Positions 11,964-42,184 of a DNA stretch of 64,000 nucleotides are shown here, one piece after another. Location: contig CP075493.1 of assembly GCA_021613535.1 (NCBI GenBank), positions 12,586,001 through 12,650,000 on the forward strand, given 5' to 3'. Every line of letters starts with the position of its first letter. Position 1 is the first letter of the stretch. The stretch comes from Adineta vaga. Lineage: Eukaryota; Animalia; Rotifera. The notes beneath the pieces were generated by a model. It had not been told where the DNA came from. It did no database searches and was given only the letters and a program-made list of their open reading frames with translations. The position numbers and the translations under genes are program-made.

Positions 11964-14900
11964 ATGATATCAAAACGTAGAAGAAAACGAAGAAGATCAA
12001 AAAAGCAATCAACCACCATTAACATTAAACAAAATGAAGTGAACGTTCTCAGAAAAGAGATAATATTAGAAAATAACAGTCAAACAACAGATTATATCAA
12101 AAGAAACAAATGTAGTAAAACAAAAATATCTCGTAATGGATCGGTTTCACACAAGAAATTAAAGCGCGAACCACATCAAACACAAGCTGACAATGGTATT
12201 ACAATCGTTTGGCTTGATATTAAAAATAGTGATTATTTAAATCGAGAAGCAAGTTTACATTTAATTTCAAATTATTTGAAACTATTCAATAATATTGACT
12301 CATGTATTGATTATTTATTGTCGTTAGAAATTGATAATAGTAAACAGAAGATATTTCTCATTCTCTCTGGTACACAAGGAAAAACAATTCTTCCACTTGT
12401 TTATGAACAGTTACATATCATTCATATTTACATATTTTGTTCACATAAAGAAAAACATGAAAAATGGATTAACAAATATTTAAATAAAATCAAAGGAATT
12501 TTTATTGATAAAAATGAATTAATCACGGCACTTAATGATGATATTTTGTTTTATACAAAAACTATCTCAATGTCAATTTTCTCACCAATTACTTCTGTTA
12601 GAAATGAAATATCTATAAGAAATTTAAACAAACAACATGCTTTATTTATGTGGTATCAATTATTAATTGAAACATTGAAACGAATGCCCTTAACATTAGT
12701 ATCACGAAATGAACTTTTAGCAGAATGTCGAGTAGAATATTCGAACAATCAAATAGAATTATGTAAAATTCAAGAATTTGCAGATACTTACAATTCAGAT
12801 AATGTAATTGGCTGGTACACCCGAGATTCGTTTCTTTATCGTTTACTAAACCGAGCATTGAGAAGTCAAGATATTCGTATCATATATAATTTTCGTTTCG
12901 TACTTGTCGATCTTCATAATTGTTTGACACAATTACATTCGAAACATATTCATTCATTAAAGACAAAACCTGAAACAAGTTCTGTATTGACTGTCTATCG
13001 TGGACAAGGATTACCTGTTGAAGAACTACAAAATTTAAAAGATAATATAGATGGTCGTATTGCAATGAATAGTTTTCTTTCTGCAAGTCTATCTAGTGAT
13101 ATTGCACTTGGTTTTACTGGTAATGGAACAGGTCGTCCAATGGTTGAGTCAGTACTTTTTGAAATTAACTGTCCGACAAAAGAATATTCATCAAAACCAT
13201 TTGCGAATATTCAAAATTATAGTCATTTAAAAACGGAAAATGAAATTTTATTTACACTTGGAACAGTATTTCAAATTGATTCTGTCGAAATCTTAACAGA
13301 CGAGATTTGGCATGTTAAACTTACATTATACGATGAAGATGATGATATGGATCGAAATGAATTAATTGATAATTTAAAATCGGATATAAAAGATACATCA
13401 GAAGTTTCAACATTAGCAAAATTATTAATAGAAATCAATGAAATTGATAAAGCTGAATATTTTTATCATTTAATACTTAAAGATCTTCCATTGAATCATT
13501 GTGATAGGATAGCTGTTCAAAATAATATTGGTGCAATACATGCATCAAAGGGAGACTATAAAACTGCTTTGAAATGCTATAAACAATCATTTAAACTTAG
13601 TCAAACATTATTACCATATGATTTTGTCACTGTATCGATGATATTAAATAATATTGGATATGTTTATAATGAATTAGGGAATTATATACAATCAATAAAA
13701 TATCATCGAAAAGCATTTCGAATACAAAAAAAAGTTTTTCCATTGAATGATATCGAATATGCTACTACATTCAATCATTTAGGAGTTGTATACGGATGTA
13801 TAAGTAAATATAATTTATCTTTAAAATATCATCGAAAAGCAAAAAAGATTCGAATGATGTTTCTTCCAGCTCAACATCCTAATCTAGGCGATACTTTTAA
13901 TAATATTGGTGAAGTTTATCTTTCAAACGGAAATTTCAAAGCAGCACGAATAAATCTGGAAAAGTCACTTGAAATTCGGCTTAAATCATTGCCTGATAAT
14001 CATCTAAGTCTATCAGCTACTTATACAAATCTCGGATGTACATACGATCGAATGGGTGATTCTGAAAAGGCACTTGAATATCATAAAAAAGCATTAGATA
14101 TTTCTCGCAAATCTTTGCCTAACAATCATCCTGATTTGGCAACAGCGTATAATAATATGGGTGAATGTTATAGTGAACTTGATGATTATACATCTGCTTT
14201 ATTATGTCATAAAAAAGCGTTAAAAATCCGTATTAAATCTTTACCTATTAATCATCCAGACATAATTACATCGTACAATAATATTGGTTCATTGTATAGC
14301 GACAATAATAGGAATAAATTAGCTTTACGATATTTAAAGAAGGCACTTTCACGATCATCGTTCACTACAAACAAAGAATTGTTGGCTCGTATTTATTTTA
14401 ATTTAGGTGTACTCTATGAAAACAAATGCAATATTGGAATGACTATAAAATATTACAAAATAGCAATTAATCTTGAACTTGCATGTCAGGAATATAATAC
14501 AAGTCCAAGTTTAGCTATTACATATATTTCATTAGGACAAGTCTATTTAGAAGAAAATGATTTAGAAAATGCGTCAATTCAATTTGAAAAGGCTTTGAAA
14601 ATTGCAGAGAATTGTTTGATATTTGACGATAATCCAATTCAATTAGTATTATCGAATATTGTCGAAGTTTATAAGAGAAAAAATGATTATACAAATGCAT
14701 TAAACTATACGAATAAACTTCTTGATATACAATTAAAAAATACTACTATTCCTTCCGATGAATTAGCTACAACATATTTTGATATTGGTTATATAAATGA
14801 TTGCAAAAAAGATTGTAAACAAGCAGAAAGAAATTATCAAATAGCTTTAAATAATGCATCGTCAACTCATTCAAATCTAGGTCAACTATATTATTATTTA

Positions 14901-15551
14901 GCATGTATATATAACGATCGACAAGATTTTGATATTGCACTTGTAAATTATGAAAATGCTCTAAAATATTTTTCTGATAAAGATGATTATTTAGCAAATA
15001 TACATAACAATATTGGTTTTATTTATCGATGCAAACATGATTATACGAAAGCATTGGATAGTTATTATCAAGCGTTAAAGATAAATATGAATGATATGAA
15101 TTTAACATCGACTATTTATTATAATATTGCAGTTATTTATGATGATAGAAAGGATTATAATCTAGCATTGTATTATTATCAAATAGCGCTTGATGTAATA
15201 CGAAAAAGTAAAGAAATGGATGATAATTTATATATTAAAATATATAATAATATGGCGGGAATTTATCAAAACACTTTCAACTATCACAAAGGATTAAATT
15301 GTATTGAAAAAGCACTAGAATTACAATTAAACTCTGATATATTGTCTACAGATTACGAAACTATTGCTACTACTTATAGTAACTTAGGCACAATCTATTT
15401 TCGGTTATTCAATTACTCGTTAGCGTCAGAGAACTATAAAAAAGCTCTCGAAATCAGTTCAAAATTCTTACACAAAACTCATCCACATATTGCCGAATAC
15501 CGAGATCATGTTGCTGTTGTTAAAAGACATTTAAAATACTATAAAATCTAA
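11964..15551 (+). CDS. R-S-E class ADP-ribosyltransferase domain + long TPR array protein
   Basis: WYTRDSFLYRLLNRALR, VYRGQ (R), NSFLSAS (S), ENEILF (ExE), followed by many 42-aa-type TPR repeats (HPDLATAYNNMG...). Confidence 0.92.
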   Translation: MISKRRRKRRRSKKQSTTINIKQNEVNVLRKEIILENNSQTTDYIKRNKCSKTKISRNGSVSHKKLKREPHQTQADNGITIVWLDIKNSDYLNREASLHLISNYLKLFNNIDSCIDYLLSLEIDNSKQKIFLILSGTQGKTILPLVYEQLHIIHIYIFCSHKEKHEKWINKYLNKIKGIFIDKNELITALNDDILFYTKTISMSIFSPITSVRNEISIRNLNKQHALFMWYQLLIETLKRMPLTLVSRNELLAECRVEYSNNQIELCKIQEFADTYNSDNVIGWYTRDSFLYRLLNRALRSQDIRIIYNFRFVLVDLHNCLTQLHSKHIHSLKTKPETSSVLTVYRGQGLPVEELQNLKDNIDGRIAMNSFLSASLSSDIALGFTGNGTGRPMVESVLFEINCPTKEYSSKPFANIQNYSHLKTENEILFTLGTVFQIDSVEILTDEIWHVKLTLYDEDDDMDRNELIDNLKSDIKDTSEVSTLAKLLIEINEIDKAEYFYHLILKDLPLNHCDRIAVQNNIGAIHASKGDYKTALKCYKQSFKLSQTLLPYDFVTVSMILNNIGYVYNELGNYIQSIKYHRKAFRIQKKVFPLNDIEYATTFNHLGVVYGCISKYNLSLKYHRKAKKIRMMFLPAQHPNLGDTFNNIGEVYLSNGNFKAARINLEKSLEIRLKSLPDNHLSLSATYTNLGCTYDRMGDSEKALEYHKKALDISRKSLPNNHPDLATAYNNMGECYSELDDYTSALLCHKKALKIRIKSLPINHPDIITSYNNIGSLYSDNNRNKLALRYLKKALSRSSFTTNKELLARIYFNLGVLYENKCNIGMTIKYYKIAINLELACQEYNTSPSLAITYISLGQVYLEENDLENASIQFEKALKIAENCLIFDDNPIQLVLSNIVEVYKRKNDYTNALNYTNKLLDIQLKNTTIPSDELATTYFDIGYINDCKKDCKQAERNYQIALNNASSTHSNLGQLYYYLACIYNDRQDFDIALVNYENALKYFSDKDDYLANIHNNIGFIYRCKHDYTKALDSYYQALKINMNDMNLTSTIYYNIAVIYDDRKDYNLALYYYQIALDVIRKSKEMDDNLYIKIYNNMAGIYQNTFNYHKGLNCIEKALELQLNSDILSTDYETIATTYSNLGTIYFRLFNYSLASENYKKALEISSKFLHKTHPHIAEYRDHVAVVKRHLKYYKI

Positions 15552-22308: not shown

Positions 22309-22977
22309 ATGGCAAAAACTGCAGCATCGATTTGGAATTGGTCGCTACCTGTGTTACCATTCACAGTTATTATTACTTTGATAGTTGCTTTTTTCACAGA
22401 CCGTTTGATTGACAATCATTCAATGTCAAGAAAATCATTCTTTGAAATACTGGTTGTACGTGTATCTGCAAGTCGTGTGTATTTCTTTTTCGGCATTTGT
22501 TTGTTTCTTCCTCAAGTATTGGCAATAATCATTGGTCGATTTCAATTTTTATTAAAAACTCAATCAATGATTAATCGAACTGTTCTGTTCATTATTCATA
22601 TCTTTATTCTTGTACCTTTTGTGTATCTACTGGTATATATGATAATAAGTAATAATCATCCTAATATATATCAAATGAGTATCTATGGAATTTTCGAATC
22701 TATATCATTATATTGTTTAGTTCATACTATTCTAATTTTCTATCTCTATATACGTCGATCGAATGCTTCGCAACATGCAAACATTATCTGGCCAATTTGG
22801 TTTCTTATTTGTATTATTTCGCTCATTGTCTTTTATGTCATCTGGACTCGTTCGCACAACTATGTTTCAGGATTTATTGTAATTCTGTGTCCTTTTCTAT
22901 ATCTTTTGGGTTTTGTACATCAATTTTGGTTACAAGCAAGAGCAAAACAACGATATTTTGCTGTAGTCACAGCATAA
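22309..22977 (+). CDS. Polytopic membrane protein (about 6 TM), single exon
   Basis: 222-aa ORF with six hydrophobic segments; family not securely recognised (possibly Frag1/DRAM-like). Confidence 0.65.
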   Translation: MAKTAASIWNWSLPVLPFTVIITLIVAFFTDRLIDNHSMSRKSFFEILVVRVSASRVYFFFGICLFLPQVLAIIIGRFQFLLKTQSMINRTVLFIIHIFILVPFVYLLVYMIISNNHPNIYQMSIYGIFESISLYCLVHTILIFYLYIRRSNASQHANIIWPIWFLICIISLIVFYVIWTRSHNYVSGFIVILCPFLYLLGFVHQFWLQARAKQRYFAVVTA

Positions 22978-23091: not shown

Positions 23092-25107
23092 TTAATCTGA
23101 TGAAGAGATTACAGTTGAGTGTTGTATCATAACATCGATTAAACATTGAGCTTCTGGTGGAATAGCTCGTGGAACTTTGAGTTGTTCTAAGTGAGAACCA
23201 CGGGCTATTTGAGCTAAAAGATATCACAAGATTTCGCTTATTCATAATGTATAGGTATCATCTTACCTCTTTGCAAAACATGAAATGCTCCTTTTCGACA
23301 TATACGAATATGGAGAGGTTGAAGACATGCCATCTCACGAAATTCGACGTAGAATGTATTTTTAGTGCACAAACCCGTATCAATCTGTGCCGCAAATATT
23401 GACCAATCCATCTCTTCTAGTTCTTGTTCACTAGGACTTGGTGTCAACTCGATAAAAACAGTATAATAAAATGAACAATCACGGTTGATTGATGTAGCGC
23501 AATAATCAACTAATGCTCGTTGAGGCCCAACATTGTTTGTTTTGTTCAGCTCATTGATTGCTTCTAGAATGGATTGCATAAGTTGTTCTTCAGTTACTTT
23601 CTCGCCAAAATGATTAAGAAGAGCACCTCGACGGTAGCAAAGTTGAAAGACTGGTACTGATCCGACGACCGTTGAATCAAGTTCAACGTATTTGATCACA
23701 TCACCCATCCGATAGCGATAGAGACCATTCCAATTAGTTGTAACAATTTCGTATGGTCGATCTATATATTGAATTAAAGTAATAGTTAACAGAATTTGAT
23801 TTCATCTTACTTATTTCAGCGGCATCAATCGAGATGCACTGAGGATTTTCTACGAACCATTGATCTTCAGGTAACAGTTCCGTATAACCATACAGAATGG
23901 CATGGTGAAATCGATTGATAGCTGTATAGTTTTCTTGTATACCAAGAAGAGCTTCGGAAGCAGCATAGTTTTCTCCGAGACAATGTACATCTTCACCAAC
24001 AATCATCTCTAATTTAGCACAGTGATGTTCAAATGTAGTTGCTGCAGCTGACTGTGTAATGAGTAAACCTGGAAAGAGTAATTTTCCCCAACCAACAGGC
24101 AATACATCATGATTCATTATATTTTCAATTGTTCGAGCTAGATCTTCGTCAGGTGGTTGTAAAAGTGCAATCAATTTATTACGCAGTTCTTCTGGTATTG
24201 ATTTCCATATAGGAGAATTTTCTGTGTCTGGTTGACCAGTACGTATATCATGCACGATTTCACGCCATTTCATCTGTATCATATCGAATAGAAGAATGAT
24301 GCTCGTAATGAATATACCAACAATAGTACGCACATGACGACCATTCTTTAAACCAAACAGTATATGCATATAGTAAGGTTCCATAAGACCATAGTCCAAT
24401 ACTTCATATGCTTCTGGTGGTGATGCATAACGCCAGATTGGTGAAAAAGAGCAATCTACAGAGAAAGCCATACCAGATGTGTCTTGCAATTGTTTCAAGT
24501 AATGTATATGCTCCTTCATCACTTCATAAGTGTACATTGTAATTGAACCGATAAATTTTCCATCTGATGCTACTTTCATAGAATCTTGACTGTAGAGAAA
24601 TAGTTCTCTGCTTTCAACATCGAACAATTGTGGATATTTTTTATTCAATACGTAGGCTTAATCATTCATTTGTGTTTGAATAATACGCATGCCTTGTTTA
24701 TGAACAGCAAATCTTTTGGATTTACTAGTAGTTCCAGTAGTTTCAGCATATAAAAGTACTTTATCGGATGGTATAAGAAGATCAAATTCCAGTTTATTAT
24801 TGATCATTTGATTGACATAATCTTCAATTTGTTTGTATGTTGAAACTGGTACACTCGATGTAAATAAAGTTACAAGTCGATCATCATTACCATCTGATAA
24901 ACGTAACATATCATTTAAATGATGCATTTGACCAACGACGGTATCTTTAAGTTCTGTTAAAACTATACGTAACTGCTGTTTATTTGTTAGATATGTATTT
25001 TTCGTCAAGTGTTTAATTTCTTCGTGTGTTCTTGCCCATTTTGTTAACTGTTGATCGAACCAAAGTTGATAAAGTGCTGTTGCATTATCATGATTCCAAG
25101 CCATCAT
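23092..25107 (-). pseudogene. GH3-family acyl-acid amido synthetase-like gene with one in-frame TAA (24658-24660)
   Basis: ETTGTTSKSKRF (P-loop-like motif), YAASEA, GLYRYRMGDVI, GEKVTE, QLKVPR; introns 23762-23810 and 23214-23266; ORFs 24658-25107 and 23734-24648 share a frame, separated only by TAA GCC TAC GTA. Confidence 0.85.
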
Positions 25108-25324
25108 GTACGTAGACCGTTTGTTGAATTACCTTCTCTTTATCTACAATATTAAATAGAATGTCAATTGCTTCTTCCTCATACTCTTTCGTTTTTTTGT
25201 CATTTCGAAAGTCATGTTTCGATAGGAAGATCCAGATCGTATTTCTATCAATTGCATCAATTGCATACAGATCATAATGTAAGCAAAAAAAATATAAGTG
25301 AAAAAAAACGGATGTGGGTGTGAT

Positions 25325-28300
25325 CTACGGTTCTCTTACACATTGTAATGATTTGTAATAGAAGCCTTTTTTCATTATTAATTGATGATGTGTTCCACTT
25401 TCGATAATATAACCATGATGAAGAACACAAATCAAATCAGCATCTTGAATAGTCGATAGACGATGTGCGACAACAACCGAAGTACGACCAATCAGTGTTT
25501 TAGCCAATGCTTCTGTTACAATCTAAATCATCAATTCTTCTAAGTTTTCAGCCATTCTGTATGAATAATATTCTACCTTTTCACTTTCATTATCCAGTGC
25601 TGATGTTGCTTCATCAAGTAAAATTACTTTTGGATTTCGAATCAATACTCGACCGATTGCTATACGTTGTTTTTCACCACCTGATAGTTGATTACCTTTG
25701 GAACCAACACATGTTTGATAGCCCTATTACAATAAAAGTAAGGTTTTCATTTAAGAGCAAGAAAACGTTTTCAAGAATTACTTGAGGTAATTGTTGAATA
25801 AAATCATGGATATTAGCTTGTTTTGCTGCTTCAATAATTTCATCCATTGACACATGCCGAGATAAGTCTCCATATGCAAGATTTTCTGCAATGGATGCAT
25901 TGAAAAGAATCGGTTCTTGTGTCACTAATCCAATTTGAGAACGCCACCAATTTAAATCCATATCTCGAAGATCTTGCGAATCAATTAACTATAGATAGAA
26001 AAAAATCATCGAACGATGAGATAAACATTCACAAAGTTCTTTTCGTACTATTGATCCATTTTGAACATGATAAAATCGTTCGAGAAGATGAAAGAGTGTA
26101 CTTTTTCCACTTCCACTGCTGCCTACGCGATAATGTATTTCATTCTATTGTCTATTTTCCATCGTATAAACTTACCTACTAATGCAATTCGTTGTCCTAA
26201 AAAGATTCCGAAAAAACGTATTAAAATATCGAAAAAGAATTCATTCATACCAGTTTGAATATTCAGATTGAAATTATTCAATATCGACACGGATGGTCGT
26301 GTTGGATAAGCGAAACTCACATCTTTGAATTGAAGATCACCAATGTAATTTTTCTATAGAAAAAAGAATGTTCATTATAAAATATTCTCAACATTGATTT
26401 CAATTCGACGAACTAATTTTAAACCATGGGAACCAATAGAAATAGTTGGATCTCGAGCAAATAATACGAGCAATTTTCGTGCAGCTGAAACAGCTTTACC
26501 ATAATCAGGTGCTCTTTATAGATATAAATGTACAATAGATTCATTATTACTCTACACTTACAATGCAACATTTTCTCCAACAATTTGAGCTCCAAATATG
26601 ATACAATTGAAAATTCTACGACAAACAAAGCATAATTTTATCTTCGGATATGAAAAGTGCATTCTTACATTAAAACATCTTTGAATGTCATAATATTTTG
26701 TTCGACTAAGATTCCACCATAGAAAAATACAGCTGCCATAGCAAAAAATATAGTCGATGATGTAGAACTGTAAATAAGAGAAAAGACAAAGATGCGTTTC
26801 AATGATGATCTAAACACGAAAGAGAGAGATATGATTGATCATTGATTATTGTATTGAATAAACCTGTAAGGAATATCTAGTAGTTGACAATAATTATTGA
26901 GAAAATGTTCTTCAATCATCAATTGTCTAACTGTACGAATATTCTCCAATGTTTCTGTAACTAGCTGAAAATTAAAAGTTTCATATTAATTGATGAATAG
27001 GACTATGGGAATAAAAAAAACACCAACTGCTCCGGCACGTTCGAAAGATTGACTATCTTGAGTAAAGAATCCTTGCATAAGATAAGTTTGTAGTAGGGCA
27101 CCAATTAATATAAATGGAATGAAAGCAAGAGCAATCAAAGTTAACCTCCATCCAAATAGAAACGCAATAATTATTCCAATACCTAAATTAGCAAAACTGG
27201 ACAAGATCGTTCCCAGTCGAATTCCTGCAACCTATGCAATTTATTCTCAAATGAGTTACACGAGTATAGTTGTAATTTAAATCTACGTACTCCTTGAACA
27301 GCGGAAGTATCTGTTGATAAACGTGTACAAAGTACACCAGTATTATTATCGGAATGATCGAACCAAGTTATTTCTTGTCGTAAAATTGTTTGAAATGCTC
27401 GTGTTCGTAGACGTTTTGTTAAAGATTCACCTGAATAAGCAAATATAAAGTCCTGAAAAGAGGATAAGAATAACATATTGCGATAGTTAATTGTTCAAGT
27501 CAAATATTTGAATACTTGGGTAAACATTGTTAGAAAAGTAAGAATAGCTAAGAGAATGAAGCAGATAACATAAAATTTGATTTCCTTATCTTGAACTTCT
27601 GTATCACATTCTTGATAAACCTTTAAATGGAGAAATTATTTTATTTAGGCAAAAAAAACTTTCAGTATACCGTTATGATTTCACTTAGTAAAACAGATGT
27701 TAATGGTTCAAGACCTCCATTATAAACAGATGCTAATGTACCGATAACAATCGACGGTAATTCAGGTCGATTCAATTTCAATATAGCCAATGATGGCCAA
27801 CGCTTAAGAAAAATCAAAAAGATTTCATATGAATTTCCAAATGAAAACGAAAATATCTTACAGTTTTCTTTTCGATATCGTCTGTAGTTGTCGATCTATT
27901 CTTTGTAAATGTAGTAAGTTCATTGTCAGATGTCGAATCATCGAAATCTTCTGAAAAATTCAAATTCGACATCAATAACTGTGATTCATCGTCATCAATA
28001 TGTTCTTCTAATAGTTGAGCTTTCACAAGATGATAATAGGTTGATCGATAACTCATCAATGTTTCATGATCGCCTTCTTCAATTACGGAACCATTATCAA
28101 GAACAATGATCTTCTGTGCATGACGCACTGTAGATAGTCGATGAGCAACTATAATTGTAGTTCTATCTACACAATAGATGAAATAGAACAGAGAGAAATT
28201 TCAATCGAAAAATACCTTTCGATAGATTTTTTAATACTTCTTGAACTATTTTTTCACTTTGATTATCGAGTGCACTTGTAGCTTCATCCAATAATAATAA

Positions 28301-30347
28301 TATCGGATTCTTTATCAATGCTCGTGCAATAACGATACGTTGTCGTTCACCACCAGACAACTGTGTACCACGTTCACCAACGATCGTGTTATAAGCCTTA
28401 ATACAATATACACCTCTAACATTTTCATAGTTTCAAATCACATACTTCAGGTAAAGACATGATAAAATTATGAGCATTGGCTGCCATAGCTGCTGTTTGA
28501 ATTTCATCAAATGTCGCATTCGGTTGACCGTATTTAATATTTTCCAAAATTGTTGTAGAAAAAAGAATCTAAACAAAGATCAAACTGATTTGTATTGTAC
28601 TTTTGAAAACAATACGTACAGATTCTTGATTGACAACACCTATGTTTTGACTTAATTCTTGTGAATTAAACTGTTCAATTGGTTTATCATCAAGTAAAAT
28701 TTGTCCTTCAGCAGGTTTATAGAATTGTTGTAATAATTGCATACATGTCGATTTACCTATAATGAAACAAATGAAGAGATTTTCGAAATGTATGAAAAAT
28801 TAATCATCCTACCACATCCACTCGTGCCTACTAGGGCTATTGTTTCACCAGATGTGGCTTCAAAATTCAATCCATGAAGAACATTTTTATCTGGTCGTAA
28901 TGGATACGAGAAATGAACATTATCAAATTTAACTCTTCCACAAAATTTCTTCTGCGACTTTTTCGTATTCATTACACATGTTGATTTTTTCTAAAGACAA
29001 ATTCAATATAATTATTAACTACGAAGAAATGTTTCGTTATACCAAATGAAGAATGTCTTGTATCGAAACAGCCGCAATCATAGCTTGATGAATTGATTGA
29101 CGGTATGTTCCTGTTTGTCCAAGTGAAAATATCGCCACAATAACAGATAAAAATACCTAATTATCTGTGTATGTACATTATCGTTAATATATGCGTATAA
29201 ACTTACAAGAAAAACATTGGCAATATTGTAGGTTTCATTCTGAATTAATCGATGCCCATACCAGAAAGCAAGTGCATAAGAACATAAGAGAACGGTATAC
29301 ATCGAACCGGAGAGTAATCCAGCGATTACTCCTTTGTTTATACCTTGTTGATAAACGAATTCAATTTCTTTTTCATACCTTAATCAAAAGAAAAAAAATC
29401 AGCAATTTGAATAAAAACAAACTACCGTGCTTGTTCATGTTCAACACCATTAAATGAGAAAACGGTGCGTATATTACTAAAGACTTCTTCCGCGATTGTA
29501 CCAGCACGTTCATATGCTTGTAATTCTTGTGTAATTACTTTCGAAGTCATCTAATAAAGCATGGAAAATTACTATTGTCTCGTTTCTCACAGAAATGTAT
29601 ATATATTTACTTTTGATGAAATCAAAAGAACAATCCAAAGAATAGGTGCTAATGAAAGTATGACTAATGTCATTTTCCAACCATAAATGAATCCTATCGT
29701 CATACCAATGATAAATTTCGATAGAAATTGAATAGTTAAACCAAGTTTTTCACCAATACCATCGTGAATTTTATTGATATTACTAAAACATTAAAATAGA
29801 ATAGTATTACGACGAAAACGACTTACTTATTGAGAATCGTTGTTAATTCGCCCGTTGTATGTATATCAAAATAAGATATCTCGGCTTGTAGAAGAATACG
29901 AAAAACGTTTTCTCGTAGTTTTCTTATTTGACGTTCACATGATAAAGCAAAAGTGCTTGTCTGTACAAAAGTTAAGACTATCGAAATGCAACCAATACCT
30001 ATAAACAAAAGAAATCTGTTGTTTATTGAAAACCAAAAGTTTAGTATACCGCTAAGATATAATGCTTGAAGATGCAGTTTTTCTCGAAAATTAATGGTAC
30101 TTGAACTGAAATGACATGCATTACTTTATATCGATGTTGATATTTATTGTCATTACCTCGATGATTGTTCAGTAAAATTTAATTGACAAAGATTACTTGG
30201 TTGATCAAGAAATGTTCCGATCATAGTGGAAAGAAAATAGGCAATCAATGGTTCAATAGCACCATGACCAATAGCACTCAGTACACCAATGAGTAATAGG
30301 AAAATATCAAATCGAGTTGTGTAATGAAATAGATTCATTTTTTCCAT
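25325..30347 (-). CDS. ABCB-family full transporter (P-glycoprotein/MDR-like), many exons
   Basis: Two TMDs and two NBDs: GTSGCGKST / LSGGERQR / [11 protein letters not shown] and GSSGSGKST / LSGGEKQR / [16 protein letters not shown]; many short introns. Confidence 0.95.
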
Positions 30348-30650
30348 CGGTATTGATTGATTGAATGAAATATGAAAATAAACGCCACGTCTTTTGAGAA
30401 TATATAGATATTGTTAGTTTTCCTTCCTTTTTATCAAAGGTCATTTCAATGAGATCAAACTGATAAGGAAATGACGAATAACAATGATCAATTCTAATAT
30501 CAAAGGTTACAAAAGTCACTTCCGTACGTATATGTAATGAAATCGTTTGCCAATATCTTACTCATATTTTTTCGTACCAAGCTTCTGAAAAAGGAAGTGT
30601 AATAGGAAAATACCACTAGATCACTGATATATAGAGTGATGTGAAATAAA

Positions 30651-32441
30651 ATGTTTAGTTTAAAAATCATGTTTTCATCAAATACAATTTATAATTCTGA
30701 TCTGAGTACGTATCATCTATTTCATCAATTGGAAGGAGAATTTAATCAGTATTTATCAACTGTTGATTGGCGAAATAATTCATCGAAAGAATATTTTGAA
30801 ATTTCATCCGATTTTGTACGAAATATTATCTATCCAAAAATGAAACAAGAAGCAGAAATATTAGCTGAAAAACTAGCGAAAAATGCAAGTATGCAAAAAG
30901 ATCGATGGAGATCATATTCATGTACAACACTAATTCATCAAATTATGGAAATTTTATTCAATAAATGTATTCGTCGTGGTTCGGTTCCAACTAATAAAAA
31001 CGATTTATCCATTCGTGAACAATTAATTAAAGATGCTCTACTAAGTAATCATGGTCTAAGATTTTCTATTCTTATGTTACCAAATCGAGATTTAAATAAA
31101 GCAAAGAATGATGGTTATCTGCCAGATTTAGGAGAAACTATTGTACTTTTACAATTATGGTCTATTATTAAAGCTATGTTATTAGTAACAGAGAAATATT
31201 CTCATTTATTAATAACAATATTTAATAAAATTAATCCATCTGTGCGAACAATTGTCGATATACAAGATAATATTAAACATATGATAAAACCAAAAATACA
31301 TGATAATAATAATCGTTCCGAATATTTGAATAATGGTAGCCGAATGGATCGTTTAAGAGATGAATTAAATCGAAATTACGATATAATCAATAATGAAAAA
31401 GCTGAATTACTCATACGTGAATTAGCTCGTTGTAATCGTACATTTCTTTGGTTTTTACAATCGATTGAAGAAGTTTTTCAAATTCAAACGAAATCAATTC
31501 GTCTTTTTGTTGTACAAGATGCTCATCGATATCCATGTTTTGATACTGATTCGAAAGAACACATCGAAGCGTATTCAACATATTTAAAACAAATAGCATT
31601 AGAATTGAATATTCATGAACATATTATCTTAACATCACATGCAAATTTAGAACGTGAATATTCATATCAACAAAATTTACAGATGTTTATTCAGCTAAGA
31701 AATGAAATTTATTGTGAAAATTTTGAAAAATATTCCTTTCCATTTTATCAACGAAAAACTGATTTATTTGCTTGTAAAACACGTGAAAGTTTTTTAAATT
31801 TAATCGATCAACTTTCATTGAATAAGAATATTTCACAATTGATCGAACCAATCTTACATGGACGAAATCATCCCGAATTAATAAATGCACAACTTTCAGT
31901 CAGTGATGAATTATTACTTTTAGCTCAAATCTATCAACCACAAACAAACAGTCAAAAACGTGAATTATTGAGACAAGACTTATTATTTTCAAGTTTAATC
32001 AATGCGATTAAATATTCATGTGCATACGAATCACAAACAGCAACAAAGAATAAATATCAACTCGATGATATACAACTTTTGTTGCCGGATACAGTTCGTT
32101 TAAGTATTCATAATAAACCATCAAATTGTGGACAATTTCTTATAAAATGTGGTCCAAATTTACATCGACAACCATGGCATGGAACGGCTGGACTACGATT
32201 AAGATCTAATAAATCATCACATTTCATGACATACGAAATTCGATTAAGTTTTGAATATAAAATTAATAATTATATTCCAATATTTATTAAGAAAGAATCA
32301 ATAATCAATGAAAATTATCTATCAAATTTAGTATCTATTCATCAACCAATTGTTTGGATTCATAAAGATTTAATTCAAACGTATGTGAATGATGATCTTC
32401 ATCGAATTTTTGATCGAACAAATCATATTCGAATGATTTAG
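30651..32441 (+). CDS. Dit1/PvcA-like isocyanide (isonitrile) synthase family protein, intronless, divergent
   Basis: Ordered motifs N-x2-K-x2-G-x-LPDLGE-x3-L-x2-L, VRLSIH and PWHG match the PvcA/IsnA/Dit1 signature order; the PAFP-x-KS and SDG motifs are divergent (LMLPNRD, QDAH). Confidence 0.65.
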   Translation: MFSLKIMFSSNTIYNSDLSTYHLFHQLEGEFNQYLSTVDWRNNSSKEYFEISSDFVRNIIYPKMKQEAEILAEKLAKNASMQKDRWRSYSCTTLIHQIMEILFNKCIRRGSVPTNKNDLSIREQLIKDALLSNHGLRFSILMLPNRDLNKAKNDGYLPDLGETIVLLQLWSIIKAMLLVTEKYSHLLITIFNKINPSVRTIVDIQDNIKHMIKPKIHDNNNRSEYLNNGSRMDRLRDELNRNYDIINNEKAELLIRELARCNRTFLWFLQSIEEVFQIQTKSIRLFVVQDAHRYPCFDTDSKEHIEAYSTYLKQIALELNIHEHIILTSHANLEREYSYQQNLQMFIQLRNEIYCENFEKYSFPFYQRKTDLFACKTRESFLNLIDQLSLNKNISQLIEPILHGRNHPELINAQLSVSDELLLLAQIYQPQTNSQKRELLRQDLLFSSLINAIKYSCAYESQTATKNKYQLDDIQLLLPDTVRLSIHNKPSNCGQFLIKCGPNLHRQPWHGTAGLRLRSNKSSHFMTYEIRLSFEYKINNYIPIFIKKESIINENYLSNLVSIHQPIVWIHKDLIQTYVNDDLHRIFDRTNHIRMI

Positions 32442-32619
32442 AGTTTCTTTTTTTTTTCATTGGAAAAGCGAGCCATTGCATCTATTTAGACGAAAGAAAA
32501 GGAATCTTTTCTTCTATAAAGAAATATTATACAACAATTACAAAAGAAAAAGAAGATATCGAAAATGAATCGTTGTTGAATAAATGTTTTTGTTTCTTTT
32601 GTTTTGTAAATGAATCTTT

Positions 32620-32838
32620 TTATGTCGATCTACATCCACAACCATGACAACAGATAATTAGAAGTACAGTTGATATAATTCCACTACTACCAGCAACTAG
32701 AGATAGTATAGTCAGAAATTCCGAACGTTCACAATTAACTGGTTTATGAATATAATGTATAGCAAAGCTGATTTGTGTTATGCATATACCAATTGTAATG
32801 AAACACAGAATACCAAGGAGAATCGTTTTACAACACAT
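32620..32838 (-). CDS. Small two-TM Cys-rich membrane protein (72 aa)
   Basis: ATG-started ORF with two hydrophobic helices; resembles the N-terminal half of the 34810-35473 gene. Confidence 0.5.
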   Translation of the reverse strand: MCCKTILLGILCFITIGICITQISFAIHYIHKPVNCERSEFLTILSLVAGSSGIISTVLLIICCHGCGCRST

Positions 32839-40166: not shown

Positions 40167-41630
40167 TTATTTTGCAGACAAAGAAAGACAAAGACAGAGA
40201 AAAAATAATGATATGACTAACGTCATATTATGACTATTACTAACATTTATAGAAAGTAAATCCATTGAGTATATCTCGCCTGGCACTATTCCGATATTTG
40301 TGAAAACTATTGTATTTTGTCCCTTTTGCAATTCAACAGAAATTAAAATTGAACTCCAATTGTCTGAATAGAGAATATCAATCGTTTGAGTAGCATTATT
40401 ATTGATCGTAATCAGATAATTCGTCGTATTGGTACGCTCTTTTGAACGAACTTGTACTATGACAGTATAGAATCCTGTTATGTCTACGTCAACATTGAAT
40501 GTAACATGTTGTGCTGATGGATATAACTGATAACGTTGTCGTCGAGGTTCACCTTGAGGTAGAGGAATAGGCTTGTTAGGATCTAAGAGTTCATTCAAAA
40601 TTGGTGTTCCATCTTGTTTATTCCATATAAATGGTTGAATTCTAATCTGTCTTGTCCATCCTGATCCATTGTATGCTGCCGTATGAAATATTAACCAGTT
40701 ATCACTAGTTAAACTTCCATGACCTGGTCCAAATAAACCATTTCCACTTTTGAGAATAGGTTCCGATCGTTTTTGCCATGATGTTGAATTCATTGGATCA
40801 GCATATTCATTAGCAGTTATCAATCCCATACAATAATCATTTGTCCAACTGCCTGAAGCAGAAAAGACTATACTAATAGTTTTATCGTAAATAATGACTT
40901 CAGGGCCTTCATTAACGTGTGGTGAATGATTAATTTCCCAAGGATAGTTGGGCCTAGCAATTTCGACACGCTTTGAATCAATGGTATATGGATTAGACAT
41001 ATGAGCGATGTATAGAATCTTACACAAAAGAAAACATAATTAAAGTGAATAGAAGGACTGAAATCTTACTTGCATAACATCAACATCTCCCTCCCATCCG
41101 GACCATATAAAGTACAAATTATTTGTCAGTGGATGTTCAAATACTGTTCCATCAATTGCCCATTTATTTGAGTCATCTGTTAGTTGACCTCGGAATGTAA
41201 ATTCACCTTGAAATGGATCATCATTTTCATTTTCCAAAACAAACATTCGATGATTTGCATTATTACTATCACAAGTAGTAGCAGCGAAATAAACATACCA
41301 TTTCTTTTGAATAAGATGAAGTTCAGGTGCCCAGACATCTCGGCATGCTGTCGTATTGTTTGGTAACCAAATAATTTTTGGTTCTCCTAGATCAAGTGTA
41401 GATAAATAACGCGATCGCCATATGATGATATTGATCTGAGTAGATTTCGTTGCATAGTAAAAACCATTCGTGGGATGTTTATATACCCATGGATCAGCAC
41501 CATCTTGAGAGATAAACGGATAGAATGTATCAACAATAGTATAATTACTAATTGTTTTCGAAGTTTTGAAATATGCACTGTGAACCAGTGTAATCAGAAA
41601 TAGAAACAACAATACACGTGTCATTATCAT
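40167..41630 (-). CDS. Secreted GH43 glycoside hydrolase (arabinofuranosidase-like) with C-terminal CBM-like beta-sandwich and hydrophobic tail, 2 exons
   Basis: GADPWV, WAPELH, WAIDGTVF, VNEGPE, GPGHGS motifs; 51-nt intron 41019-41069 (DVMQ-ILYIAHM). Confidence 0.93.
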
Positions 41631-42184
41631 TGAAGAACACGAGAATATGATCTCTTTGCATGTATCTTTACATCTATCTTCAAGTTAGAATCGTATATTT
41701 TTCTCTGCTATGTCATATAAACTGATAAGATTCCTTCGCTTTCTATTTCAATAATTGTAAAAAAAACATAAAATACACTTATTGCACTCATTAATGCATT
41801 ATAAAAAAAAAGATTTTCGATTGTAATGAGCGAATATATCGTCGTCATTTTTTTACTTAACAATAGAATGTTAATGAATTCGGAGAGCATTACATTTTCA
41901 ATGTACATATGTATTTTTGCATTACCATTACGTTTTTAATTCATTTTGCTTTTTTTCATCTATTTTGTGTCAATTTATTTTCCTATTTTTCTTAGTCATG
42001 CAAAGTATTACCCTAGCTCAAAATATTTATTTATCTTTCTCATCAATCGTCACAATTAGCGACATGAGAGCCTGATTTTTTGCTCGCACGGAATAAAATA
42101 TACTTCCTTGTGAATATCTCAGCATATACTTGGTAGTAATATAAATATCAACACTATTTCTTTCATTTTTCAAGTGGATAAAAA

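Follow-up and report, generated by a model that had tools for sequence, protein, structure and literature searches.

PvcA, IsnA and Dit1 join the alpha-amine of an amino acid (tyrosine or tryptophan in the characterized relatives) to C2 of ribulose-5-phosphate, and the product is an alpha-isocyano acid. In yeast, Dit1 works with the cytochrome P450 Dit2 and the exporter Dtr1, of the major facilitator superfamily (MFS), to provide N-formyl-tyrosine for the spore wall. Here, we examine a 64,000-nucleotide stretch of chromosome 1 of the bdelloid rotifer Adineta vaga (contig 1, 12586001-12650000; hereafter the window, with positions counted from its first letter), in which a gene resembling this family lies beside one for a GH3-family enzyme and one for an ABCB-type transporter. 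A first-pass annotation had read the trio as a gene cluster in which the synthase makes an isocyano acid, GH3 couples it to an amine, and ABCB exports the product or protects the host. At stake is the ability of animals to produce isonitriles or N-formyl amino acids, compounds with which microbes bind metals, inhibit other microbes and cross-link their walls. We find that the synthase-like gene belongs, by the modeled structure of its product, to the Dit1/PvcA/IsnA family, and that the trio probably consists of three intact, independently evolved genes that became neighbors only in the A. vaga lineage and are otherwise unrelated.

The family of the synthase-like open reading frame (ORF) was decided by its fold. 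The Pfam model DIT1_PvcA (PF05141) matched the predicted protein at 36.4 bits, above the gathering cut-off of 26.4, over residues 474-514 only (41 residues), and 30 of 31 aligned homologues matched the same model, the best with an E value of 5.7e-27. Used as a single sequence against solved structures, the protein found no relevant relative, and only the family profile reached PvcA of Pseudomonas aeruginosa (3e59), with an E value of 1.1e-20 over three collinear blocks; PIsnA (9dhm, 9dh4) was matched as well. The three shared blocks are P...K...PD-L-G-E, Q-D-A-x-R-Y and R-L-S-I-H...P-W-H-G, and P-W-H-G lies at residues 508-511. An AlphaFold (AF2) model built from the family alignment had a predicted local distance difference test score (pLDDT) of 91.9 and a predicted template modeling score (pTM) of 0.92. 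When the model was submitted to Foldseek, the top eight matches were all PIsnA or PvcA at a probability of 1.0, and the ninth had an E value of 0.6. Moreover, VIA-align superposed the model on PvcA with a Z score of 24.7 and a root mean square deviation of 3.7 over 292 of 305 residues, and on PIsnA with Z scores of 23.2 and 22.7, while the next fold, that of tyrosyl-tRNA synthetase, scored 7.5. Residues E162, D290, R293, Y308, Y455, R483, I486, H487 and K489 are invariant in the 31 homologues, and all are kept in the window protein. We conclude that the modeled protein genuinely has the Dit1/PvcA/IsnA fold, and because the fold match is decisive, the assignment made in the first-pass annotation is not refuted.

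The rotifer protein differs from its characterized relatives in several respects. PvcA and PIsnA are bacterial tyrosine/tryptophan isonitrile synthases; 284 to 292 residues could be aligned between them and the rotifer protein, which is nearly the whole of the solved chain, and all share the motifs P-x-x-x-x-x-x-K...PD-L/M-G/A-E, D-A/G-R and R-L-S-I-H...(T/Q)-P-W-H-G. Identity in the structural alignment is only 18 to 19%, however, and at 596 amino acids against approximately 320, the rotifer protein is about twice as long and falls outside the compact size of PvcA and PIsnA (approximately 300 to 330 amino acids). The extra length lies in an N-terminal extension of approximately 90 amino acids, a helical insertion of approximately 100 amino acids after PDLGE, a further insertion of approximately 55 amino acids, and a longer C terminus. 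The database model of the protein begins at codon 7 (30669) and is 590 amino acids long. Unlike PvcA and PIsnA, the rotifer gene has no PvcB/IsnB-type dioxygenase gene to be seen nearby. Yeast Dit1 has PF05141 in common with the rotifer protein and is a case of eukaryotic use of the family, in which an N-formyl amino acid is exported by a transporter. The rotifer locus, however, is without a P450 partner, its transporter is of the ABCB type rather than MFS, and its synthase falls in a long, mainly proteobacterial subfamily, whereas Dit1 falls in a fungal one.

The relatives of 580 to 635 amino acids form a distinct long subfamily, and it is rare: an exhaustive HMMER search returned 49 matches among 1.84 billion representatives. 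Its close relatives (43 to 64% identity) are all bdelloid, and come from Rotaria socialis, Rotaria sp. Silwood1, Rotaria sp. Silwood2, Didymodactylos carnosus and two metagenome contigs with rotifer-like G+C. More distant members (22 to 40%) are Pseudomonadota proteins of 580 to 635 amino acids, from Thioclava, Acidovorax, Variovorax, Aureimonas, Bradyrhizobium and several metagenome-assembled genomes (MAGs), together with sequences from soil organisms. An Alg9-like mannosyltransferase is encoded on one of the soil contigs, which makes a eukaryotic origin probable. A search of metagenome contigs with the single synthase protein gave nothing, while narrower family alignments found five bacterial and three further loci. 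A protein of the nematode Acrobeloides nanus (823 amino acids), named in UniRef as DUF2357 containing, and a metagenome protein on an ENA contig (824 amino acids) each carry a long Dit1/PvcA-like region behind an N-terminal extension of approximately 230 amino acids. The nematode sequence represents a second animal lineage that has the gene, or else contamination.

Where the gene came from was approached with a maximum-likelihood tree, in which the bdelloid synthases are monophyletic (Shimodaira-Hasegawa-like approximate likelihood ratio test, 100) and comprise at least two paralogue lineages. The bdelloid clade is sister to the soil-organism group and nested among bacterial sequences. The tree was midpoint rooted only and several of its rows have long branches; thus, we take it to favor an old, single bdelloid acquisition and do not name a donor. 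The gene is present in all three bdelloid genera sampled (Adineta, Rotaria and Didymodactylos). The common ancestor of the bdelloids probably acquired the synthase gene from a non-animal donor, and the gene has since been duplicated and has persisted in the three genera. The first-pass annotation had supposed that the trio was assembled partly from horizontally acquired genes. For the synthase, that view held, as the gene lacks introns and falls within a group of Pseudomonadota and other non-animal sequences, but it did not extend to ABCB, which is an intron-rich P-glycoprotein of the metazoan type. Because their intron loads differ (none in the synthase, three in GH3 and approximately twenty in ABCB), the three genes appear to have arrived separately.

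What the long subfamily makes is hinted at by its bacterial neighbors. Eight distinct bacterial gene contexts were compared. In two of the eight, a stand-alone DJ-1/PfpI gene lies directly downstream of the synthase, and the best solved relative of its product is isocyanide hydratase (E value of 3.8e-26, against approximately 1e-7 for other DJ-1 proteins). Another three contexts contain an MFS gene plus a DJ-1/PfpI-like gene, and the remaining three contain neither. Thioclava, the sole MFS-type context with domain calls, encodes DJ-1/PfpI fused to an AraC regulator. The pairs of synthase and DJ-1/PfpI genes look like an undescribed small isonitrile operon. At one of these loci (L005), a CntK_N (histidine-racemase-like) gene follows the DJ-1/PfpI gene. 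In fungal isocyanide synthase (ICS) clusters, MFS and isocyanide hydratase genes are likewise the commonest accessories (PMC10153163). That bacterial members of the long subfamily adjoin hydratase-like and MFS genes, as in the fungal clusters, is independent but indirect support for the subfamily probably sharing isonitrile chemistry. By homology, the rotifer enzyme would act on an amino acid by linking its alpha-amine to C2 of ribulose-5-phosphate and release an alpha-isocyano acid, which might be used directly or end as an N-formyl derivative, as with yeast Dit1. A search of the window and of the other rotifer loci found no DJ-1/PfpI, CntK or bacterial-type MFS gene. Elsewhere in the A. vaga genome, unlinked to the window, there are three intronless DJ-1/PfpI ORFs. 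For the two that were compared with solved structures (L029 and L031), a ThiJ-family amidase (3mgk) ranked first and isocyanide hydratase followed (E value of approximately 2e-17). The three ORFs are possible hydratase partners or further acquired genes.

The trio is part of the rotifer chromosome and is not a contaminant. An 11.6-kb contig from an independent DNA run of 2013 is identical to positions 26900 to 31319, spanning the ABCB gene and the synthase ORF, and the G+C content of the ORF (approximately 28%) is host-like in a genome of 100.8 Mb and six contigs with approximately 31% G+C. The locus is genuine because the 2013 contig joins an intron-rich ABCB gene to the synthase ORF and because the base composition of the ORF is that of its host. 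The identities and positions that the first-pass annotation gave to the three genes agreed with Pfam, with motifs and with our reading of the sequence, and its gaps of about 220 and 300 bp proved to be exact to within a few base pairs (Table 1). The spacer between ABCB and the synthase becomes 323 bp if the synthase starts at 30669, and in either form it could contain a shared divergent promoter.

Table 1. Positions of the trio, its spacers and a flanking ORF in the window, and of linked or related genes at other loci (prefix L)
Feature	Position	Strand	Description
GH3-family gene	23092..25107	-	Four coding pieces; Pfam and motifs
GH3/ABCB spacer	25108..25324		217 bp, ABCB stop to GH3 start; tandem minus-strand genes
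ABCB (P-glycoprotein-type) gene	25325..30345	-	Approximately 20 short exons; order TMD1-NBD1-TMD2-NBD2 (TMD, transmembrane domain; NBD, nucleotide-binding domain)
ABCB/synthase spacer	30346..30650		305 bp between start codons; head-to-head
Dit1/PvcA/IsnA-type synthase-like ORF	30651..32441	+	Intronless; 596 codons
222-codon ORF	22309-22977	+	Frag1-like membrane protein (Atlas feature match 0.93); no Pfam match
Synthase, then hydratase-like DJ-1/PfpI gene (bacterial MAG loci)	L005:10001-13652, L006:10001-12615, L007:403-3017, L022:2492-4824		
Synthase linked to MFS and DJ-1/PfpI-like genes (Thioclava, Aureimonas, Pseudomonadota MAG)	L004:10001-14039, L019:965-4626, L021:2832-6659		
A. vaga DJ-1/PfpI ORFs	L029:1397-2098 (contig 5), L030:1343-2032 and L031:1359-2027 (both contig 3)		Intronless; 222-233 amino acids; unlinked to window

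The transporter gene is a full ABCB gene. Its exons were searched individually, as were those of GH3, and Pfam ABC_membrane and ABC_tran matched them in the order TMD-NBD-TMD-NBD. The stop codon lies at 25325-25327 on the minus strand, and the most likely start, read from the sequence, is the ATG at 30345. The Walker A motif of NBD1 is split across two exons, that of NBD2 reads SGSGKST, and the signature LSGGE(R/K)QR and Walker B are intact in both halves. The nearest solved chains to the TMD2 exon are ABCB4, ABCB1 and ABCB11 (E values of 2.5e-21 to 3e-18). Exon by exon, the domain order, motifs and nearest relatives are thus those of a full ABCB transporter. Its sequence suggests an ordinary metazoan-type multidrug or lipid pump from a family that is large in A. 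vaga, as at least 26 ABCB-type TMD exon matches were found in the genome. Upstream of the ABCB start, an out-of-frame ATG (30444) begins a reading frame of 45 codons that runs across the start codon itself, and no intron signals that would join the two frames were found between 30345 and 30444.

The third gene belongs to the GH3 family by both of its domains. It runs on the minus strand from an ATG at 25107 to a TAA at 23094-23092, and its coding pieces lie within the open frames 24658-25107, 23734-24648, 23238-23708 and 23092-23214, separated by three introns. The profile searches that had been proposed for checking the annotation matched here as they did for the synthase: the Pfam GH3 N-terminal domain was found in the first two pieces (E values of 1.6e-15 and 6.9e-15) and GH3_C in the third (E value of 1.9e-9). 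The adenylation motifs in the translation include a P-loop-like TTGTTSKSK and YAASE, and the third motif spans a splice site. The database model of the protein, "hypothetical protein I4U23_004116 [Adineta vaga]," was searched as well and matched plant JAR1/GH3 structures with an E value of 8e-25; plant GH3s are the match among solved structures. The best non-rotifer matches are 24 to 27% identical, and the two named clusters among them are bacterial GH3 proteins (Bacillota). We regard GH3 as a divergent, bdelloid-conserved protein that its sequence predicts to be an adenylating ligase.

Whether the three genes travel together was asked at the loci of their orthologues. For the synthase, up to 10 kb on each side of every orthologue was searched by tblastn with all GH3 and ABCB exons in R. 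socialis (two assemblies), Rotaria sp. Silwood2, Rotaria sp. Silwood1 (two assemblies), Didymodactylos (two assemblies) and a 60%-identical metagenome contig (2.7 kb upstream), A. vaga being the only Adineta species in the comparison. Neither ABCB nor GH3 was found within 2.7 to 10 kb of the synthase at five other bdelloid or bdelloid-like loci. Moreover, no ABCB gene was found upstream of the GH3 orthologues of Didymodactylos (1.7 kb), of a 66%-identical metagenome contig (0.5 kb) and of a 310-kb contig of 44% G+C (10 kb). The synthase and GH3 genes are each single copy in the A. vaga genome; thus, there is no homeolog to compare. Contig 2 carries the nearest ABCB paralogue (near 12.65 Mb; 45 to 60% identity), whose surroundings share no other window gene across 40 kb. 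Linkage in related genomes or homeologs had been set beforehand as a check on the cluster, and it failed: neither partner accompanied the synthase at the five loci, and ABCB did not lie upstream of GH3 at the three. At the Didymodactylos locus, an MFS gene lies head-to-head with the synthase paralogue and was considered as a sign that a "synthase plus exporter" pairing recurs in bdelloids, but we rejected this reading because the exons of the MFS gene have the motifs of a glucose transporter (GLUT)-like sugar porter and do not match the bacterial MFS neighbors.

How the trio is spaced does not set it apart from its surroundings either. Only 114 bp separate the end of the Frag1-like ORF from the GH3 stop codon. 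On the other side, approximately 565 bp lie between the synthase stop codon and the confirmed exons of a PAN-domain gene, and that gap falls to 178 bp if an unconfirmed ORF at 32620-32838 is the last exon of the PAN gene. The packing of the trio is not tighter than the local background, as the gaps to unrelated flanking genes are similar or apparently so. Moreover, genes for MFS transporters, P450s, dioxygenases and isocyanide hydratases were not found near the trio in the window. Of the gene cluster proposed in the first-pass annotation, then, physical adjacency of backbone, tailoring and transport genes stands, with gaps of 217 and 305 bp, but that adjacency is not conserved, its packing is not special, and the usual ICS accessory genes do not accompany it.

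The fungal ICS clusters offer a close parallel for such an arrangement (Lim et al. 2018, PMC5974471; Nickles et al. 2023, PMC10153163). They, too, place a transporter gene next to a backbone ICS gene; approximately 60% contain an MFS gene and 21% contain an isocyanide hydratase gene (PMC10153163). In contrast to the fungal clusters, the rotifer window has no MFS, P450, hydratase or transcription factor gene, and whereas the fungal cluster families are defined by conserved colocalization, the neighbors of the rotifer synthase differ across species. Bdelloids have biosynthetic clusters of their own, built on polyketide synthases and nonribosomal peptide synthetases (PKS/NRPS), and like the locus described here, these join a foreign biosynthetic gene to a metazoan-type ABCB gene (Nowell et al. 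2024, PMC11258130). The PKS/NRPS clusters, however, are multimodular synthetases that are strongly induced by a fungal pathogen (PMC11258130). Neither the text of Nowell et al. 2024 nor the first 200 of the 206 files in its supplement mention a Dit1/PvcA or a GH3 gene.

Why the three genes stand together in A. vaga is probably answered by the packing of its genome: they appear to be intact, independently evolved neighbors without a common function, and their adjacency would reflect the normal tight packing of the A. vaga genome rather than a conserved biosynthetic cluster. A shared pathway is unproven because the trio is found together only in A. vaga and at ordinary gene spacing. Several points nevertheless weigh against dismissing a connection. 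The lack of conservation is just what one would expect of a cluster that had come together recently in the Adineta lineage, and two head-to-head genes with so little between their start codons are arranged as if they shared a promoter. Efflux transporters beside isonitrile synthases are common in fungi (PMC10153163) and occur in the bacterial relatives analyzed here as well, and for bdelloid PKS-NRPS clusters, flanking ABCB1 and MFS genes are on record (PMC11258130). One may propose a functional mini-cluster specific to A. vaga, in which the 305-bp spacer would drive both the synthase and the ABCB pump, the pump would carry the isonitrile or N-formyl product out of the cell or shield the cell against it, and GH3 may conjugate the carboxylate of the product to an amine. 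Its merits are the head-to-head spacer itself, the recurrence of transporters and isocyanide hydratases beside the long subfamily in bacteria and in fungal ICS clusters (PMC10153163), the coinduction of the ABCB1 genes that flank the bdelloid PKS-NRPS clusters (PMC11258130), and the retention of family motifs by all three genes. We nonetheless think it unlikely, as none of the other bdelloid loci examined shows the linkage and an unrelated ORF lies even closer, 114 bp from the GH3 stop codon. In addition, ABCB genes are numerous in the genome (at least 26 matches to TMD exons), no gene for a P450, dioxygenase, MFS transporter or hydratase was found beside the trio in the window, and the probable RNA assemblies contained nothing of the 5' part of ABCB or of the synthase ORF. 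Moreover, our literature search found no precedent for GH3 in isonitrile pathways, and the notion that GH3 amidates an isocyano acid derives solely from adjacency. Bolder still, and improbable, is the idea that A. vaga recently built its own isonitrile unit by placing an anciently acquired synthase and a native ABCB gene under one divergent promoter, with GH3 as the tailoring enzyme. If true, it would be the first animal-encoded unit for the biosynthesis and export of an isonitrile (or N-formyl amino acid) and a case in which an animal genome formed a cluster out of genes with separate origins.

A different account would leave the synthase with no pathway at all: the gene may be under relaxed constraint or heading to loss in A. 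vaga, and its intact allele may be a dispensable relic. A search of sequencing runs found the ORF in four, all from one 2013 study, and the run that was compared (X1) behaves as DNA. In that run, the only contig shown over positions 31290 to 32455 differs from the window at 17 places, 14 of which change an amino acid. One change replaces leucine with phenylalanine at residue 254, which is invariant among the eight closest homologues, and another (32166 C>T) turns the CGA of codon 506 into a TGA stop inside the invariant stretch H-R-Q-P-W-H-G. A third DNA contig joins at approximately 31275 from unlike sequence, so that a second haplotype may be without the 5' part of the gene; the depths of the DNA contigs are 61, 62 and 97. 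Together, these contigs suggest that the second haplotype carries a disabled, perhaps truncated copy of the synthase. Relative to the orthologues, the window allele has derived states at residues 456, 525 and 561 and the other allele at residues 237, 254, 261, 506 and 530, and because both alleles hold derived states, constraint on the A. vaga synthase may be weak. The terminal branch of A. vaga is also the longest in its clade (0.33, against 0.10 to 0.25). Finally, six runs guessed to be RNA contain next to none of the sequence words of the ORF, and three probable RNA assemblies (X5, X7 and X11) gave no real contig over the 5' part of ABCB or the synthase ORF when compared with positions 26900 to 32800, although the runs were only guessed to be RNA and a missing contig does not prove silence. 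Against decay, the window allele is a complete open frame that keeps every residue invariant across the 31 homologues. In an asexual diploid such as A. vaga, one allele is commonly lost without the other being disabled, and the assembled run contigs (Logan) can be mosaics of two haplotypes. We consider a relic unlikely, as we do the mini-cluster, and we favor three intact and unrelated neighbors over both.

The interest of the locus lies in the enzyme and its long subfamily more than in the three-gene arrangement, and the cluster claim failed the synteny test. Within the Dit1/PvcA/IsnA family, the rotifer enzyme represents a new, long variant, and its gene adds one more to the horizontally acquired biosynthetic genes of bdelloids. 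A literature search found no paper on a Dit1/PvcA-type gene in rotifers or other animals. The enzyme is a worthwhile target because its gene is fixed in a rotifer chromosome and conserved in three bdelloid genera, and because its bacterial kin adjoin hydratase-like genes.

The remainder of the window holds genes of several other kinds, including those for an ankyrin protein and a caspase-domain protein. A large open frame at positions 12000 to 15548 encodes an ADP-ribosyltransferase (ART) domain followed by many tetratricopeptide repeats (TPR). An ART-TPR gene also lies downstream of a synthase paralogue of R. socialis (L009:14901-18479). The ART-TPR family is large in bdelloids, and its recurrence beside synthase genes is probably chance. 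At positions 40170 to 41684, two adjoining open frames on the minus strand jointly span a glycoside hydrolase family 43 (GH43) domain. The GH43 family is typical of bacteria and fungi, and the gene is probably another acquired one.

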